This document shows, piece after piece, positions 33,367-43,118 of a stretch of 64,000 nt of DNA (positions within the stretch are counted from its first letter, which is position 1; each line of letters begins with the position of its first letter). Position numbers and translations under genes: made by a program. Below the pieces are notes generated by a model that was not told the DNA's origin, made no database searches, and worked only from the letters and a program-made list of their open reading frames with translations. This DNA is from Selaginella moellendorffii (lineage: Eukaryota > Plantae > Lycopodiophyta): positions 3,654,443 through 3,718,442 of the forward strand of contig NW_003314265.1 in assembly GCF_000143415.4 (NCBI RefSeq). The letters are read 5' to 3'.

Positions 33367-35810
33367 ATGGCGATCAATCCTGGGTTGCTCACGCACTGGC
33401 CATGGGAGAGGCTTGGAAGCTTCAAGGTTTCTCTCTTTCTCTCGCTGTACATGCATGCATGCGCATTCCTAAATCTCTCTCGTTGTCTCTTGATCTTGGC
33501 AGTATCTCCTCTACTTGCCTCTGGTGGCCAATGCAGTGCGAAGCGCGATGACCCCGGAGGGCCGCTCGAGGGACAACTTTAGCCTCCATATCCTCGTGCT
33601 CGCGGCGCTGCGCTATATCCAGGGCCAGCTATGGATCACGGTCACCAGCGTCCACGACATAGTCAAGAAGCACCAGGTCCAGACCAAGGGGATGAAGTTC
33701 GATCAGCTGGACAGGGAAAGAGATTGGTATGCGATCACAGACTTTGTCAAATCTCTCTCTCTCTCTCTCGCGCGCGCGCGCTCACGGCTTCTTTCTCTTT
33801 TGTTTCTTCCGTCACTCAGGGAGGATTTCATACTGCTCCAGGCGCTGATGTTGCTCGCGTACCAGTTCTCGCCACTGTGCTTGCCGAACCATGCCGTGTC
33901 GGATTGGAGGGGTTTGGTCATCACCATCCTCTGGCACCTGGGACCCGTGGAGTTCCTCTATTACTGGTTCCATCGCGCCCTCCACCACCATTCTCTCTAC
34001 CGCCGCTACCATTCCCACCACCATCTCTCCTTTGTCACCCAGGCCGTGACTGGCAACGTCCATCCTTTTGCCGAGCACCTGAGCTACGCGGTCCTCTTTG
34101 GCTCCACGCTCATTGTCAACCTCTTCCTTGGCACCGCCTCGCTCGCCCTCATCTACTCCTACATGCTGTGGTTTGATTTCATGAACTACATTGGCCATTG
34201 CAACTGGGAGTTCATGCCATCCTGGATGTTTCAAGCTCTTCCTCTGCTCAAGTACCTCGTCTACACTCCATCGTAAGTTTTTCTATCTTTTCAACTGCTT
34301 GATCCTCCACATCTCCTATCCTTCCAGGTTCCATTCTCTCCATCACACGCAGGTCCACACAAATTTCTGCCTCTTCGTTCCCCTATACGACTACATTTAT
34401 GGGACCGTAGACAAGACAAGCGGTCAGCTCCATCTTGCAGCTCGTCAAGGTACTTTGTTTTGTCGTTTTTTTTCTTTCCAGCTTCGTCGGGACTTATAAC
34501 TTGCGTGACCACGCAGGCAGGACGGAGTTGGTGGATTTCGTGTTCTTAACGCACCCGACTGACCCCTTATCGATCTTCCACTTGTCGTTTGGGATACCAT
34601 CTTTTGCAGCGCAGCCGTATGGCAGGAGGTGGTACATTTGGCTCCTGTATCCTCTGGCGCTCCCCGTTATGCTGCTGCTGTGGGCGTTTGGGAGCCCCTT
34701 CACTGTTGAGGAGCACACCGTCGACAAGGTTCTCGCGCAGACATGGGCGATCCCGAGGTTTAGCTTTCACGTGAGTATACTTTCAAGCTTGCTGTGCGAT
34801 GGTAAGTTTGCGTTTTGTATAGTTTGGAATGACGTCTGAGATCGGAAGCTTGAATGCGCTCATCGAGCGCGCCATCCTGGCCGCGCAGGACAAAGGAGCC
34901 AAGTTCATATGCCTGGGACTACACAACAAGGTGTGTCAAAGTGTATACTCCATGTTGTGCACATCGTTATGATCCGTGCAGGACGAGCATTTGAATGCGA
35001 GTGGAGCACTGTTTCTGAAAAACCACCCCGACCTCAGCATCAAGGTGGTGGACGGAAGCACGCTAACCAGCGCCATTGTTCTTGACAAGCTTCCAAAAGA
35101 TGCTAGCGAGGTTTTCCTGGTCGGAGCCGAGCACAAAGTTGGCCGTGCCATCGCCAACTATCTCTGCCGCCACCGCGCCACTGAAGTGACGGTGAGCAGC
35201 TAGCTTCTGCCCGCCTTTCCCACGTAAAGCTCTGGTTATTTCCTCAGGTTCTGGCTAAATCCTCGTCCTATGCCTTTGAGTCGCTTAAAAAATCGGTCCC
35301 GCAAGAATCCCAGCACAAGCTCGTCGCAGTTGAGTCACTCGAGCACGGGAGGCACTGCAAAGTATGATATGCTTCCTTCCCAGAAAAGCTGGACGTAACT
35401 TGCTGGAATTTACAGGCCTGGATCGTTGGAGAGCCCCTGCGAGCGATGGAGCAGCTCCACGCTCCTTCTGGAGCTTGTTTCTATCAATTCACCGAGGAGG
35501 CTATGGAGGAAACCCGTCCTGATTGCTTGTACGCCAAGCTTCCAGCAATGCGCCTGCCTCCCGAGTATAAAGGAATCCGAGCTTGCGAGGTGAGAGTCTC
35601 TCCGTTTTCACTTGCTGGTGGCGCTCATCGTCTTCTTTGTCCTGGCAGGGAAGCATGCCGAGAGGAGTCGTCCAGGCAAGTCACGCGGGAGGAATCCTGG
35701 CGACCATGGAAAACTGGAACCATCACGAGGTTGGCAACACGATTGACGTGGACAAGATTGATGCCGTGATGAGAGCGGCTGTGAATCGTGGCTTCGTCCC
35801 CTACTATTAA
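33367..35810 (+). CDS. CER1/CER3-family very-long-chain alkane biosynthesis protein, multi-exon
   Basis: [21 protein letters not shown], His boxes HRALHHH, YHSHHH and [23 protein letters not shown]2 C-terminal domain WNHHEVG. Confidence 0.93.
33752..33781. repeat. Intronic compound microsatellite (TC)n(CG)n
   Basis: tctctctctctctctctcgcgcgcgcgcgc. Confidence 0.9.
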
Positions 35811-35844
35811 GTTTGGAATAATTTCTTCCAAGTCTTGCAATAAC

Positions 35845-36953
35845 TTAAAACTGACCAGTTCCAGCCATTGTCCACTTCTGCCACTGCAGCTCTCGTACCT
35901 TGTCCTCTAACAGCAACTTCTGAGCTTCCATCTTCCGGATTTCTTCCTGTTATCCAGCATTAGCAACCATTGTTATATGAGAGAAGAGTATTTATCTTTC
36001 ACCTTGTAACTTTCCAGTTCCTCGCTCGCTTTGAAGAAAGCCTCCCAAATGGCACCTTCTGACGACGGGAAATGCAGCATCTGGTTGGGAACGACGGCCA
36101 AAGCCCGAGCACCAGCGGACGTGAGTTCCTCCTCAAACTTATCCATGTCCTCTGCCGGTCTCCAGAGACACAAGTAAACTGGCCACCCGAACCGGATCCA
36201 AAAGTGGAAGAAGACGAGGCAGCAGACGCAAAACGTTAAGAAGCATCTGCCGGCAATGCTTTCGCTGTCCCCTGTGAAGACCGCGATGGCAGCGAGAAAA
36301 CAGATGGCCACCGCCATAGTCAAGTACTCGCAAGTGTGCGCGTACTCCACAGTCAACAAAGGATCTTGCTGGTTGCGCAGCTTGTACATAAACACGATAA
36401 CCAGTAGCAAGTTTGGAGTGTAGACCGCCAGGACAGTGAGTACTCTCGCAGAGTCTAGCGTACCATGATGTTCCCTGCTGATAATACGAGCTTTGGAGAA
36501 TGAACATGACTAGAGCATCAAACTTTACCTCTCTCGCTTCAAGTTTGCGGCCACGAACAAAACCAAGACTGGAAGCATGGAGGCGAGCAGTAGAGCGTAG
36601 TTTCCCCAGGACCATTTGTGGATGTTCCGGCTGAGCTCGTACATCCGACGAAGCCGGAGAACCGTGAGCATGAACCAGGAGCAAACCCCCAGTCCTTGTA
36701 GCCAAAATGCCCATCGGACGCCGCTTATAAAAGGCCCGGTATGCTGGAAGTGACCATCGTTGAGAAAAGATGATGATATCCAGACCAAGCCAGCTAAAGA
36801 GCTGCACAGTACGAGGTACACTCCTCCCTGTGCTCGAAAGTAGGAGCGATTGCGATGGACGAAGAGCACGCCATTTGCTATGATAAATGGTACCGCAGCT
36901 CCCAAGGCGAAGCCCAAGAGTACGTAGTCATAGACAGTGTCAGTTCGATCCAT
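35845..36953 (-). CDS. RGS1-like 7TM protein without RGS box, copy 1 (3 exons)
   Basis: Seven hydrophobic segments, WAFWLQG, RCFLTF...FFHFWIRFGWP, HFPSSEGAIWEAF, coiled-coil tail. Confidence 0.8.
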
Positions 36954-37366
36954 TAGCTGTCGCTTCCTTCCCAAAACTAAAAAACCATCTTAGGTTGTGA
37001 AGGCATGAGTTTTCTGCTTGACTTGGAAAATTCAGAACATTTGAGAAAATTCAGTCCTTTACGTACTCTTTACACAGACTCAGGATCCGTGTGTGCGTGT
37101 TCTCTTTTTCGTGGAACAGCAGTGATCGTCCGTGCACGGCAAAAAATCATGACAGGGAAGCAGAGAACCCGCTTAAAAGTCAAGTTGTGGAAGAGTCTGC
37201 AAAACAAACAAAGCTTTGGAACACGACGAAGAAAACTAGCACATTGAATTTGTGACCTTGGCAGTCTCCTTGAAACTTTCCCTGAGGTGCTGGACTCAAA
37301 GTCAAGTAAAGAATCAAAAAGATTGAAAAGGAGATGGAACAAAATGCCAACCTTGCATAGATTAAC

Positions 37367-38546
37367 TTAAGAATGACCAGATTCAGCTGCTTTTCTCTTC
37401 TGCACGTGTAACTCTCGGATCTTCCCTTCCAGCAGCGCTTTCTGCACTTCTAGCTTCCGTATTTCATCCTGTTTCAGTGTAACATTAGCTAGAGCGCCAG
37501 AAGAAGAAAAAGAAACAAGCTCTACCTTATATCTGTCCAGATCGTCACTAGCTTTGGAGAAAGCTTCCCAAATAGCACCTTCAGAGGAAGGAAAGTGTAT
37601 CCTTTGGCTGTAAACCATGTCCAGAGCTCGGGCACCACCGTAAGTTAGCTCCTGCTCGAAGTTGTCCATCTCCTCTTTGGGCCTGAAGAGACATAGGTAA
37701 ATCGGCCACCCGAAGCGTATCCAAAAGTGAAAGAACACGAGACAGCATGTTGAAAACGTTAGGAAGCATCTGCCAGGGATAGTATCGCTAGCTTTCGTCA
37801 CAACCGCGACGGCGGAGAGCATGACAATGACGATAGCCATAGCCAAGTAGTCCAAAGTGTCCCTGTACTCGGTAGCTAGCAGTGGATCCTCCTGCTTGCG
37901 CAGCTTATAGATAAAGAAGATGAGCAGCAGCCAGTATGGAGTATACACGGACCGGACGATGATTTTCCAATGCTTGCTTGGGTTGCACGCCGGTTTGCTG
38001 TTATCAAGAACAATCAGTCCGAGAGAGAAAGAGATGAAACTTGGCAAGCCATGAACTTTACCTTCTCTCGTGTCCATCGAAGTCACTGAAGCCAGCAACG
38101 GTGGACAGGATGACTATGGGAAGCAGGCAAAAGGCCACGAAAGCGTAGTACTTCCACGACCAGTTGTCGATGTTCTTGCTGAGCTCGTACATCCGAGCAA
38201 GCCGGAGAACAGTGAGCACGAACCACAGGCAAATACCCGTCCCCTGGAGCCAGAACGTCCACAGCACGCAGCTTCTAAGCGGCCCGACCCTGCTGAAATG
38301 GTCATTGTTGACGAACTGGGCTGCTATCCAGACTAAGCCCGCTAGCGAGCTGCCTAGGATGAGATACACACCTCCCTGTGCTCGAAAGTAGGAGCGGCCG
38401 CGATGGGCGAAGAGCGCGCCATTCGCCACGATGAACGGTACTGTCGCGGCCAAAGCAAATGCCAGGAGTGTGAAGTCGTAGGGAGTGTTCGGACGACTGG
38501 GCACCACTTCCATGTAACACCCTTGCTTGCAACATCCAGACGCCAT
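37367..38546 (-). CDS. RGS1-like 7TM protein without RGS box, copy 2 (3 exons)
   Basis: MASGCCKQGC start, CVLWTFWLQG, CNPSKHW, 7 TM, coiled-coil tail. Confidence 0.82.
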
Positions 38547-38619
38547 GGACAAAGGAAACACGCTCGACCCTCTATCTAATTTTACAGCCCTCCCACTTGA
38601 CTTTCTCAAAGCGGGATTA

Positions 38620-39758
38620 TTACTTCTTTATCACCTGTTGCTTTGCCTGGTCTCGTAGATCACGGATCTTCTCCTGGAGACGCAGCTTCTGGGCTTGGAG
38701 CTTCTGGATCTCATGCTGCAGCGACAGCCTTTTTATTCCACAAGAATGCAATCCCAAAGCTTGATCTGACCTTGTACTTCTCCAGCTCCTCGTTCGCTTC
38801 TGCGAATGCCTCCCACACAGCTCCCTCGGACGAAGGGAAGTGGACTCTCTGGCTTTGAGATATGAGCAAGGCTCGCGCACCGGCGCTGCTCAGCTGCTGC
38901 TCGAACGCGTCCATCTCTTCCTTGGGCCGCAAGAGGCACAGATAGACGGGCCACGCGAATCGCGTCCAAAAGGGGAAGAAGACGAGGCAGACCTGCGAGA
39001 CGGTCAAGAGGCATCTGCCAGAAACAATACGGCTCACGCTCGTCAGATACGAGAAGACGTATATCACGGCGATGGCGATGACCAAGGCCAGATAGTCGAA
39101 GGTGTCCATGTACTCGGCAGCCAGCAATGGATCCTGCTGGCGTTGCAACCTCCACATGACAGCGGCGGCGAAGAGCCAATATGGAAGGTAGGCCGACAAT
39201 CTGACGATCTGCCAGTTCCTGTTGATTCTGCAGTAGTGTTTGCTATTGCCAGACAGTCAAATCCAACCAGTAAGCGTTAGGCCTAGTGTGAGAGTTTGAA
39301 GCTTTTGCTCACCCTCCATGCTCCACATTGAAGTTACTGAAGATGGCAGCGGTTGACATGCCCACCACCGGAAGGAGAGAGATGGCCGCAAAAGCGTAGT
39401 ACTCCCACCGCCATCTCTTGATGTTGTGGCTGAGCTCGTACATGCGGCGGAGCCGAAAGGCAGTGAGCATGAACCAGAAGCCGAAGCTGAATCCTTGCAG
39501 CCAAAACAGCCACAGCTTGCAACTCTGCAATGGCCCGACTCTGCTGAAGTGCTCATTGTTAACAAACACCGTTGCTATCCAAGCCAGCCCAGCCAGGGAG
39601 CTGGCGAGTATGAAGTAAACCCCACCCTGGGCATGAAAGTAGGAGCGCTGGCGATGGACAAACAGCACGCCATTCGCTATGGTGAAGGGTATTGCGGTGG
39701 CAATGCCAAAGCCCAGGAGGATATAATCTATATCAGAATCTGGGCGGCTGGTGACCAT
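38620..39758 (-). CDS. RGS1-like 7TM protein without RGS box, copy 3 (3 exons)
   Basis: Same exon structure, CKLWLFWLQG, CRINRNW, HFPSSEGAVWEAF, EIQKLQAQKLRLQEKIRDL. Confidence 0.82.
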
Positions 39759-40405
39759 CTCGAGTTGCAAGTGCCCCAGTGATTGGGCGAGCTCGATTGA
39801 TCGGTCTTGAATCCTTCAAGCTACAACCACTGATCAACACTTTGACTATTTGTTTTTCGTTCTTCTATAGGTAGCTCAATTGGCCGCACTAGACTTGTCC
39901 ATGTCATCAAAATCATGTAGATAAGGAATGCAATAGAGTTTGTTGTCCTTCTCCATGATTTTATTCTCTATCATATCTTTACTGTTCTTACTGTTGTGTT
40001 CCTGCTTGATTCGTTCGTTAAATTTGTTGCACGCTCGCTTGTTTTGTTTTTTTTCGGTTCTTGGTCCCCTTAAACACTAGAGCATCAAACAAATATGTAT
40101 ATATATTTAGAGATTATAAACAAGGGTATAATCTCTCTCTCTCTCTCTCTATTTGTGGTGCATTGATTATACCTTTAAGAATGAATAAACTATATTCAGT
40201 CCTAATTAAACAGTTTATATATTAGGATAAAGGGGAAAGTTTTACAAACCTTACAAAACTAACGACGAAATTATTATCATTTAGTTAAACTGTAAATTAC
40301 TACTATATATAAACACAGTTCATGTATGTTGCTCGGATGGGCTCCATTAATAAACCAAAACTGCAAAATCTTAGTTTTTCTCAGGAAATAAAGTAGAAAA
40401 AACTG

Positions 40406-41105
40406 AGTCAAAGTCTTGATCAGTGGTTATCTCGATTCATCAAGAATGGCTGCAAGCAATCAATCGATCATGGGGCACCAAGCATAAGATGGTTGGCAGC
40501 CCTCTAGATTCTGCTATCAATTACATCGTTCTGGGCTTTGGCAAGAAACGCTCTAGTAGATCTTTTGGGCTTCAAGCTTTCGGAAGCAACAGCCGTTTTT
40601 TCCCCAATAATGCATCCCAAACTTGATCTAAACTTGTATGTCTCCAGTTCCTCATTAGCTTCTGAGAACACCTCCCACACAGCTCCCACGGACAAAGGGA
40701 AGTGGACTCTCTGGCTTTAAGATATGAGCGAGCTCAGCTGCTGCTCGAACGCATCCATCTCTTCCTTGGGCCACAAGAGGTACACGTAGACCGGCCACCT
40801 GAGTCGGTTCCAGAAGTGGAAGAAAATGTGGAAGACCTGCGAAACCATCTGCCTGGCTCATGAGAAGATGTATATCATGGCCATGGCAATGTATAAGGCC
40901 AGATAGTCGAAGGTGTCCATGTACTCGGCAGCCAGCAATGGAACCTGCTGGTGTTGCAGCCTGCACATGAAGGCAATGCCAAGGAGCCAAGACGGGAAGT
41001 GGACCAAGAATCTGACGATCAGCCAGTATTGTATACTATAGCCAGACACTCAAATTCAACCAACAAGCGTTAGTCTGAGAGTCTGAAACAAGAAAAGCTT
41101 TTGCT
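40406..41105 (-). pseudogene. Rearranged pseudogene copy 4 of the 7TM family
   Basis: The 3' half on - (40545-41105; PLLAAEYMDTFDYLAL, GAVWEVFSEANEELETYK) carries deletions. The 5' end is on + (40406-40543; MVGSPLDSAINYIVLGFG). Confidence 0.85.
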
Positions 41106-41282
41106 TGTCGATGAACAACCACCGATCAAAACTTAAATGCTCAAGTCCTGGAGTTGAATTTCTCCTTCGTGGACTGAGGAAAACAAAGGAGCAGCCTCTG
41201 CGAATTACGGAACGAGTTGACTTTCCATTGTGTGCGGTGTTTTATCAGTCTATCTCGAGAACCTCTCGAGATGCATACCTGT

Positions 41283-43118
41283 ATGGATCCCATCACAGGA
41301 TTCCCAAGGTTCCTAACTCCAATTCTAGCGTCGCTAGCAGCCATCGTCCCAGTTGCCCGGGCACAGAATGTGGCAACGTCGTCAACAGCAGCGTGGTCGT
41401 CGCAGATTGTGGCATTCTGGGGAGCCGTGGGCATCGGTGTCAGGGCGAGCAATGCCCAGAGGCCCAGCAACCCGATCACGTCCACCATCGCATCACTCGC
41501 AATTCTCCAGCGTGCTTCCGCCGCAGCCTCTGCCATACAGAGTGGCAACTGGTACGTGTTCGCTCCCGGATACAATGGCGGCAAAACCAGGATAGACGTG
41601 CTTCTTCTAAGCTGGAGGACGCCAGCCCAGTTGCAGGCCTTGTGTGTGAAAGTGTCTACCTTGGCGGAGGTTCTCGCTCGCCAGCGATGGCTGATTCTTC
41701 TCGTTGGCAGACAAAAGCATGGGGATGACGATCATGGCGCTGCAGTGCTTTGGACAAGCTCGCCCAGATGCCCAGAGTACTCGACTGTCAGGTACGCAGA
41801 CACGGATGGCATGTACTCGCCGCTGCCCGGTGAAACCATCCAGGCGCTCCTGGAATACACCGCTAGCTGCGATGCCAACAACATCGAGTTTGATACCAAT
41901 GGTGTCACCACGCTCATCTGCAACGAGATCTTGCGCAGACCAACGCGCTCGATGTCCATGAACGAGTCCAGCAGCGACGTGCAACAAGATCCGGGAATGG
42001 GGCGCTACATCACGTCGTATCAGCTCGACGGGGTGGTGATGCCATACGTGACAATCGCGAAGTACGTAGGAGACAACACGGCGACTCGAGCGGCCTTGGT
42101 AGGATCCGCGGTGTGGATGTATTGCATCGTTCACGGCATGGTGTCCGTCGCAGTGGGGCTCATGGGGGCGGCGTCCGGGCGGGGGCTTGCGGTGTGGCTG
42201 TTCGCTCCCAGGATGGTCATGGCCAAGCTTGGAGCCGAGGGCATTGCAGGCGACGATGCGTTGCTATCTCTGCTAGGATTCGATGGCGTGAGCTGCGTTG
42301 TGACTGCCCACGGAGCCAACGTAGCCTCGATCGCGACTGACAAGATCATCTCGTGGGAGCCGTCGAAGCGGGCTCGCATGGCTTGCTTGAGCATAGCATT
42401 CAACATTGTCGAGCTCTTGCTCGTGGTGGGAGGCTGGCTCTATGGCGCGCTCAAGGTGGAGAAGCTTGCGCCGAGAGGACTCGTTGGCCATGGAATGCTG
42501 TGGCTGGCCACCGTGGTGAGCACCGGTCTCTCCTTGCGGACGCTCGTGAGCGTCCGGGAGAGGCTCAAAGGCAGGCTGATTGGGATCTTCGCCGAGGTTC
42601 ATCACACCAGGCTCGCCATCGCTAGAGATCACAAGATATCAAGCACGCCGAGCTCGCCATACCTCTCGCTGGTATCAAACATCCTCTCGAGAGCCGATCA
42701 CGACGTCCAGAGCATCGAAGCAGCTCTCACGCTCATGCGCCAGCCATTGTTTTGCTCCGAGCTTCAGGAGCATGCCGCGGTCGAGGAGCTCGGGTACGCG
42801 TATCAAGGTGACACCTTGGTTAAGGAATCCGGTAACAAGGTGGTGACCACAGCGAGCGCGTTTCCTTGGATCCGGGTGGCGCTGTGCGTTTGCATCACCA
42901 TCCTGTGCTCCGCCTTTGGACCCGTCTATGCGTACATGGAAATGCCGAGGTGGAGCAAGATCGCGGCGGAGGTGATGCTTGCCGGGAGCGCTACTTGGTT
43001 TGCCACGCTGGCCAGAACGTCGAGGCTGGAGCCAAGCCATAGTACGCAGATATGCCACATGGTTGCTACCATGGTAGCCTCGGCCGTGTGGTACGTTGGA
43101 GTCAAAGACGTTGGCTAA
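41283..43118 (+). CDS. Uncharacterised intronless multi-pass membrane protein (about 611 aa)
   Basis: Long uninterrupted ORF, signal-peptide-like LTPILASLAAIVPVARA-Q, soluble N-terminal domain, then multiple hydrophobic helices. Family not recognised. Confidence 0.75.
   Translation: MDPITGFPRFLTPILASLAAIVPVARAQNVATSSTAAWSSQIVAFWGAVGIGVRASNAQRPSNPITSTIASLAILQRASAAASAIQSGNWYVFAPGYNGGKTRIDVLLLSWRTPAQLQALCVKVSTLAEVLARQRWLILLVGRQKHGDDDHGAAVLWTSSPRCPEYSTVRYADTDGMYSPLPGETIQALLEYTASCDANNIEFDTNGVTTLICNEILRRPTRSMSMNESSSDVQQDPGMGRYITSYQLDGVVMPYVTIAKYVGDNTATRAALVGSAVWMYCIVHGMVSVAVGLMGAASGRGLAVWLFAPRMVMAKLGAEGIAGDDALLSLLGFDGVSCVVTAHGANVASIATDKIISWEPSKRARMACLSIAFNIVELLLVVGGWLYGALKVEKLAPRGLVGHGMLWLATVVSTGLSLRTLVSVRERLKGRLIGIFAEVHHTRLAIARDHKISSTPSSPYLSLVSNILSRADHDVQSIEAALTLMRQPLFCSELQEHAAVEELGYAYQGDTLVKESGNKVVTTASAFPWIRVALCVCITILCSAFGPVYAYMEMPRWSKIAAEVMLAGSATWFATLARTSRLEPSHSTQICHMVATMVASAVWYVGVKDVG

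Follow-up and report, generated by a model that had tools for sequence, protein, structure and literature searches.

Tandem Selaginella moellendorffii genes encode probable class C-type membrane receptors with a coiled-coil tail and no ectodomain

We analyzed a 64,000-nucleotide stretch of the Selaginella moellendorffii genome (here, the window), in which a minus-strand tandem array of three intact genes (A, B, and C) and one pseudogene (D) encodes seven-helix proteins with a conserved HFPSSEGA-type motif and a heptad-repeat tail. The three intact genes are expressed, and they are probably members of an undescribed land-plant family of class C-type (7tm_3 superfamily) receptors that would have no ectodomain and would pair through their coiled coil. 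What is new is a plant version of a known receptor type, not a new receptor type. Literature searches on the family, on its locus tags, and on plant class C receptors returned no published description of it. Reviews hold that plants have no canonical G-protein-coupled receptors (GPCRs) and that RGS1 is their one seven-transmembrane (7TM) regulator (PMC3386157, PMC3718340). A conserved, expressed plant family with a membrane domain of the class C GPCR type contrasts with that picture, even though any function in signaling is stated here only conditionally.

Gene structure and expression

The array comprises the following features, all on the minus strand.

Gene A: 36953-36529 / 36474-36003 / 35946-35845 (including stop), minus strand; three exons, 332 amino acids (aa).
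Gene B: 38546-38062 / 37997-37526 / 37468-37367, minus strand; three exons, 352 aa, with a MASGCC start.
Gene C: 39758-39313 / 39242-38771 / 38715-38620, minus strand; three exons, 337 aa.
Pseudogene D: approximately 41080-40530, minus strand; C-type remnant running from the end of intron 1 through exon 2 and intron 2 into exon 3, with exon 1 gone.

A first-pass annotation made from the sequence alone had placed three intact paralogues and one pseudogene here, and our gene models bear this out. All introns of A, B, and C are GT-AG, the three-exon plan is common to the three genes, and model B agrees in every letter with RefSeq XP_024524954 (P0001). Pairwise identity among A, B, and C is 52 to 60%. 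The family is expanded in tandem and diverging, as had been proposed. Two details needed amendment: the MASGC start ascribed to the array belongs to B-type copies (MASGCC) and not to A and C, and the heptad tail said to run straight to the stop is real but does not form one open reading frame with the rest, the coiled coil having its own third exon. Pseudogene D is about 80% identical to C, aligns in tblastn with C residues 159 to 337, and carries deletions of 17, 23, 10, and 18 nucleotides (nt), in-frame stops, and a splice donor changed from GT to TT. A tblastn search of the whole window found no copy beyond these four.

RNA contigs from four runs, representing four studies, were placed on window positions 35600 to 41200 (5,601 letters). 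Each of the six introns of A, B, and C was seen as a CT..AC joint (GT..AG on the minus strand) in all four runs, and the three genes are therefore transcribed and spliced as modeled. An NAGNAG acceptor at A intron 1 is used mainly at 36474 and, in one run, also at 36477, giving a 333-aa product that differs by one residue. Expression of D amounts to a single weak contig in one run. The proteins had been described as lacking a GTPase-activating (GAP) domain, a description that depended on no RGS exon being spliced on, and the RNA agrees: the short coiled-coil exon ends every transcript in the contigs of all four studies. Pfam and tblastn queries with protist RGS domains revealed no RGS box in the A, B, and C proteins or anywhere in the window, and the spliced transcripts contain none either. 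A downstream RGS exon of A was considered and rejected. The sole extra 3′ splice of A, from 35855 to 35800 (two runs), takes out the stop together with the three codons before it, and the frame then continues for about 58 codons through the final exon of a convergent fatty-acid-hydroxylase (CER1-like) gene, antisense to it.

Sequence relatives and class assignment

We searched 1.84 billion representatives with a profile built from the Selaginella copies and obtained 62 matches at E ≤0.001, 19 of which match Pfam 7tm_3 at E ≤0.001. Close matches that carry names come from Diphasiastrum, Psilotum, Riccia, Marchantia polymorpha (Mp1g05640), Ceratopteris, Adiantum, Cryptomeria, and Selaginella itself (LOC9657419). 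Three of the 62 combine an RGS domain with a weak 7tm_3 match: P0027 from Ancoracysta (E = 4e-14), P0030 from Muranothrix (E = 5e-12), and P0037. Measured against the 7tm_3 (PF00003) gathering score of 33.5 bits, the fern relative P0088 passes at 43.9 bits and the second Selaginella gene (LOC9657419, P0026, of the sister subfamily described below) stays beneath it at 28.6 bits; none of A, B, and C reaches it. A word-based protein search returned Selaginella paralogues only, and PDB sequence searches, with a single protein and with the family profile, gave only weak coiled-coil matches to the tail.

In hhalign comparisons, the window subfamily aligned from the first transmembrane helix (TM1) to helix 8 both with the fungal and protist 7tm_3 group (E = 1.5e-37) and with the membrane domains of the protist 7TM-RGS proteins (E = 1.6e-34), figures that support the extent of homology more than they prove it independently, since these partners were retrieved with a related profile. 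The proteins belong to one superfamily with 7TM-RGS membrane domains, which bears out part of the RGS1 idea of the first-pass annotation; for a likeness to Arabidopsis RGS1 itself, the only hints are the NCBI name given below and a published model of the AtRGS1 7TM domain (PMC11580166). The family and its relatives have in common HFxR in loop 1, C-LW-FW in TM3, the loop-2 cysteine, GRC and FW in TM7, and Y-C-F at the TM7 end; with the protist members P0027 and P0030 the shared motifs are HFxR, C-LW-FW, GRC, and FW...Y-C.

A cysteine pair, C93 at the top of TM3 and C166 in loop 2, is present in B and C and is invariant or nearly so across the family and the 7tm_3 group. The C..W..W.QG and C-x5-W signatures that had been read as marks of RGS1 accordingly occur in B and C, and gene A has lost both cysteines (C to G in TM3 and C to G in loop 2). 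Their joint loss fits a single disulfide, as in class C receptors. Taken with the class C-like predicted fold described below, homology to 7tm_3 proteins upholds the idea of GPCR-like membrane proteins, and a class C (7tm_3) GPCR transmembrane domain is a better-supported assignment than the RGS1 likeness. Automatic names vary: UniProt uses "GPCR family 2/3 profile domain-containing," and NCBI gives "regulator of G-protein signaling 1 isoform X4" to an RGS-less conifer member (P0033).

Predicted fold, cytosolic motif, and coiled-coil tail

Hydropathy identifies seven hydrophobic segments in the intact copies, and AlphaFold2 modeling of B from a 58-row alignment without templates gave the same number of transmembrane helices, as had been claimed from the sequence (predicted local distance difference test [pLDDT], 87.8; predicted template modeling score [pTM], 0.78); a shallower alignment had given an unusable model with a pLDDT of 46. 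The helices span residues 22-47, 60-80, 93-123, 131-153, 170-194, 200-228, and 235-266. They are followed by helix 8 (269-281), a short helix, a low-confidence loop that carries the HFPSSEGA motif, and a long helix at 302-351 with a pLDDT of >90. The predicted bundle is nearer to class C structures than to those of other GPCR classes. A shape search of the ESM Atlas returned only unrelated rows, with TM-scores of ≤0.36. No large ligand-binding ectodomain of the Venus-flytrap kind was found: Pfam detects no extracellular domain, and TM1 begins at residue 22 of the model.

Two features in B mark the region after the bundle.

37526..37620, minus strand: end of B exon 2, with the predicted cytosolic HFPSSEGA-type motif HFPSSEGAIWEAF (conserved in all three genes) and the tail-helix start.
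37367..37468, minus strand: B exon 3, encoding the last 3.5 heptads (EIRKLEVQKALLEGKIREL...); equivalents at 35845-35946 in A and 38620-38715 in C.

The motif HFPSSEGA(I/V)WEAF, expected in every intact copy, is present in A, B, and C, and its PSSE core is kept throughout the subfamily to which they belong. The heptad tail also proved genuine. In heptad scoring, 88% of the a and d positions in the tails of A, B, and C are hydrophobic, and shuffled tails equaled the observed score in 0 to 2 of 300 trials (2 of 300 for B). All 17 plant members examined have about four or more heptads, with 62 to 100% of a/d positions hydrophobic (at least 75% in 16 of the 17), and the tail sequence itself is little conserved between the two plant subfamilies.

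Family history and spread

A maximum-likelihood tree of 52 proteins unites the plant sequences in one clade (98% support), within which they divide into two sister subfamilies. Subfamily 1, the type found in the window and marked by the PSSEGA motif, comprises sequences from a liverwort, Psilotum, Diphasiastrum, and Selaginella; subfamily 2 includes liverworts, both lycophytes, ferns, and Cryptomeria. Because both subfamilies occur in liverworts and in vascular plants, their split is older than the divergence of those lineages. The plant clade excludes the fungal and protist 7tm_3 proteins and the three protist 7TM-RGS proteins. The named matches included neither an angiosperm nor a moss, many of the 62 matches being unnamed; if the family is missing from angiosperms, this would explain how Arabidopsis-centered work came to overlook it.

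Within subfamily 1, A, C, and the B group make up a single Selaginella clade (100% support), which indicates lineage-specific tandem expansion. The lineage-specific branch that the first-pass annotation had entertained therefore applies to the expansion of A, B, and C and not to the family, which is old and extends through seed-free plants to a conifer. Confinement of the family to Selaginella was rejected on the same tree, given its liverwort, lycophyte, fern, and conifer members.

A second array on scaffold GL377574 carries two B-type genes (P0007 and P0008), each directly preceded by a decayed remnant of C-type exons 2 and 3 (L001:7627-7922 and L001:11293-11579). From this arrangement it seems that C and B were duplicated together as a pair and that the 3′ end of C has been retained as a carrier of the B promoter or 5′ untranslated region (UTR).

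Constraint and variation among copies

Genes A, B, and C are under purifying selection: Nei-Gojobori ratios of nonsynonymous to synonymous divergence (dN/dS) among them are 0.23 to 0.31, rough values given a dS of 1.0 to 1.5. Between B and its young paralogues dN/dS is 0.6 to 0.7, which could reflect relaxed constraint and not ligand-driven diversification. Variation among the five B-type proteins is unevenly placed. In loop 2, outer TM6, and loop 3, 44 to 50% of positions vary, and in TM5 28% do; in intracellular loops (ICL) 1 and 2, TM1, TM2, TM7, and helix 8, the figure is 0 to 9%. A variable outer face combined with a conserved cytosolic face is what one would expect if receptors retained a single cytosolic partner while the sensed input changed, with relaxed constraint as another possible source.

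Proposed mechanism and its weak points

Each protein would consist of an extracellular N terminus of about 20 residues, the seven-helix bundle, helix 8, the cytosolic PSSEGA loop, and a coil of about five heptads, and would sit in the membrane with its N terminus outside. Class C receptors work as dimers, and the GABA-B coiled coil pairs GB1 with GB2; for these reasons we propose that the plant proteins pair through their coil to form homodimers or, between paralogues, heterodimers. The input sensed, inside the helix bundle or at the outer loops, might be a small ligand or a lipid, and the signal would then reach a partner by way of the conserved cytosolic loops, helix 8, and the coil. The leading candidates for that partner are the single Selaginella G-alpha/XLG system and a recruited regulator. 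Copy A, which has neither conserved cysteine, may be a non-sensing partner subunit. Signaling through the coiled coil, as first put forward, is thus only partly retained: the coil is real, and its role is more likely pairing or partner recruitment, by analogy with GABA-B and GPR158.

Several points weigh against this interpretation. Pfam searches of the exon translations and of P0001 gave nothing above noise, so that A, B, C, and P0001 have no 7tm_3 match of their own and their tie to that superfamily is transitive or profile-based, with hhalign partners that were drawn from a related search. The class C fold is a prediction, and 7tm_3 proteins were part of the alignment from which it was modeled. 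For the tail, Pfam found no family at E ≤0.1 in residues 267 to 352 of P0001, GBR2_CC (PF18455) included. The dN/dS values among A, B, and C are coarse, and those among young B-type copies are open to the explanation by relaxed constraint. We infer membrane location, pairing, ligand, and partner, and likewise any link of the family to G proteins. Finally, a classical exchange-factor role is hard to square with the self-activation of plant G-alpha, for which a GPCR-type exchange factor is held to be unnecessary (PMC3386157).

Alternative explanations

It is possible, though unlikely, that the proteins are offshoots of RGS1, that is, products of a plant 7TM-RGS gene that lost its RGS box and that still act in the same G-protein cycle, as decoys or partners of RGS1 or by recruiting a GAP in trans through the coil. 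Such an origin would fit the homology to protist 7TM-RGS membrane domains over all seven helices and the NCBI pipeline label on the RGS-less conifer member, the motif comparison with AtRGS1 in the first-pass annotation, as well as reports that a model of the AtRGS1 7TM domain is most like class C mGlu1 (PMC11580166) and that GPR158 binds RGS7 through a cytoplasmic coiled coil (PMC8611064). Yet no plant 7TM-RGS protein appears among the 62 profile matches at E ≤0.001, a search started from the conifer "RGS1 isoform X4" protein returned RGS-less family members alone, language-model neighbor searches returned no plant RGS cluster, the three protist 7TM-RGS proteins branch outside the plant sequences, and liverworts, reported to have no RGS1 (PMC3386157), have members of both subfamilies. 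The lack of a plant RGS1 match, the position of the protist proteins, and the presence in liverworts, reportedly without RGS1, together indicate that the family is not a recent RGS1 derivative; its presence there in both subfamilies makes it at least as old as land plants.

We think it distinctly unlikely that these are GPCR-fold proteins with no receptor role, such as membrane scaffolds, lipid-handling proteins, or proteins of internal-membrane trafficking that use the coil for tethering. A fold by itself says nothing of function, these proteins have no ectodomain and no known ligand, and several plant "7TM GPCR candidates" proved not to be GPCRs (PMC3718340). Against this stand the concentration of variation on the predicted outer face with a conserved cytosolic face, the putative class C disulfide pair kept in most members, and the fact that the nearest structures and sequence relatives are all receptors.

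That the array consists of decaying, non-functional duplicates or annotation noise is scarcely credible: D is a pseudogene and the youngest B-type copies have a dN/dS of 0.6 to 0.7, but A, B, and C have intact three-exon reading frames and conserved intron positions, give correctly spliced transcripts in four studies, show a dN/dS of 0.23 to 0.31 among themselves, and have orthologues kept from liverworts to ferns.

The receptor reading can also be taken further. Non-angiosperm land plants might keep a true class C-type GPCR lineage, an RGS-less sister of the RGS1 membrane domain, that regulates heterotrimeric G proteins through coiled-coil dimers, either directly on G-alpha/XLG or by way of a regulator in trans. 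We consider this improbable as a whole. If true, it would supply the missing membrane input in plants that have G-alpha but no RGS1, liverworts among them, and would show the origin of the 7TM-RGS fusion.

Comparison with known systems

Among animal proteins, GPR156 is an orphan class C GPCR related to GABA-B that likewise has no Venus-flytrap domain; it is about 10% identical to the plant proteins, a family defined by a compact heptad tail directly after helix 8. GABA-B (GB1/GB2) combines 7tm_3 with GBR2_CC. The plant proteins differ in having no Venus-flytrap domain and no GBR2_CC match in the tail, and their pairing is suggested by analogy. GPR158 and GPR179 are class C orphans that bind RGS7-Gbeta5; GPR158 differs from the plant family in its Cache/EGF ectodomain and long disordered tail. 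To our knowledge, neither RGS7 nor a DHEX domain is known in plants. The plant coil may be of the same kind as both the pairing coil of GABA-B and the RGS-docking coil of GPR158.

Outside animals, the protist 7TM-RGS proteins have a homologous membrane domain but carry an RGS box (PF00615) in the place where the plant family has its coiled coil. The nearest non-plant sequence relatives are fungal and protist "GPCR family 3" proteins, from the Zoopagomycota Dimargaris and Dispira and from Anaeramoeba (a "gaba-b receptor"). They are 7tm_3 positive and, like the plant proteins, ectodomain-less; they also resemble the plant proteins in length but group apart from them in the tree, as separate clades.

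The family is thus a candidate membrane input to G signaling in RGS-less liverworts and may open the origin of 7TM-RGS proteins to testing. The Marchantia relative Mp1g05640, a single-copy gene of the sister subfamily, makes the family approachable.

Additional observations on the locus

A 633-aa uninterrupted plus-strand open reading frame (41217-43118) adjoins D; it has several hydrophobic stretches and no Pfam match at E ≤0.1.

The genes of the array are closely spaced, with 73 nt (38547-38619) between the C stop and the B ATG. RNA contigs pass from C exon 2/3 over this gap into B exon 1, and one unspliced contig spans A exon 1 to just beyond the B stop. The B-A spacer (36954-37366) contains three small minus-strand introns, at 37067-37013, 37257-37196, and 37352-37288. 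The C-B and B-A contigs represent either read-through or dicistronic transcripts or promoters nested within the upstream gene. On another scaffold of the same genome, the 640-aa RefSeq model XP_024519061 (P0003) joins a C-type gene with a frameshift and a B-type gene into one protein, probably a misprediction for the other haplotype that arose from transcripts covering the two genes. At the opposite end of the array, assembled contigs merge the mRNAs of A and the convergent CER1-like gene, which indicates that the 3′ ends of the two overlap.

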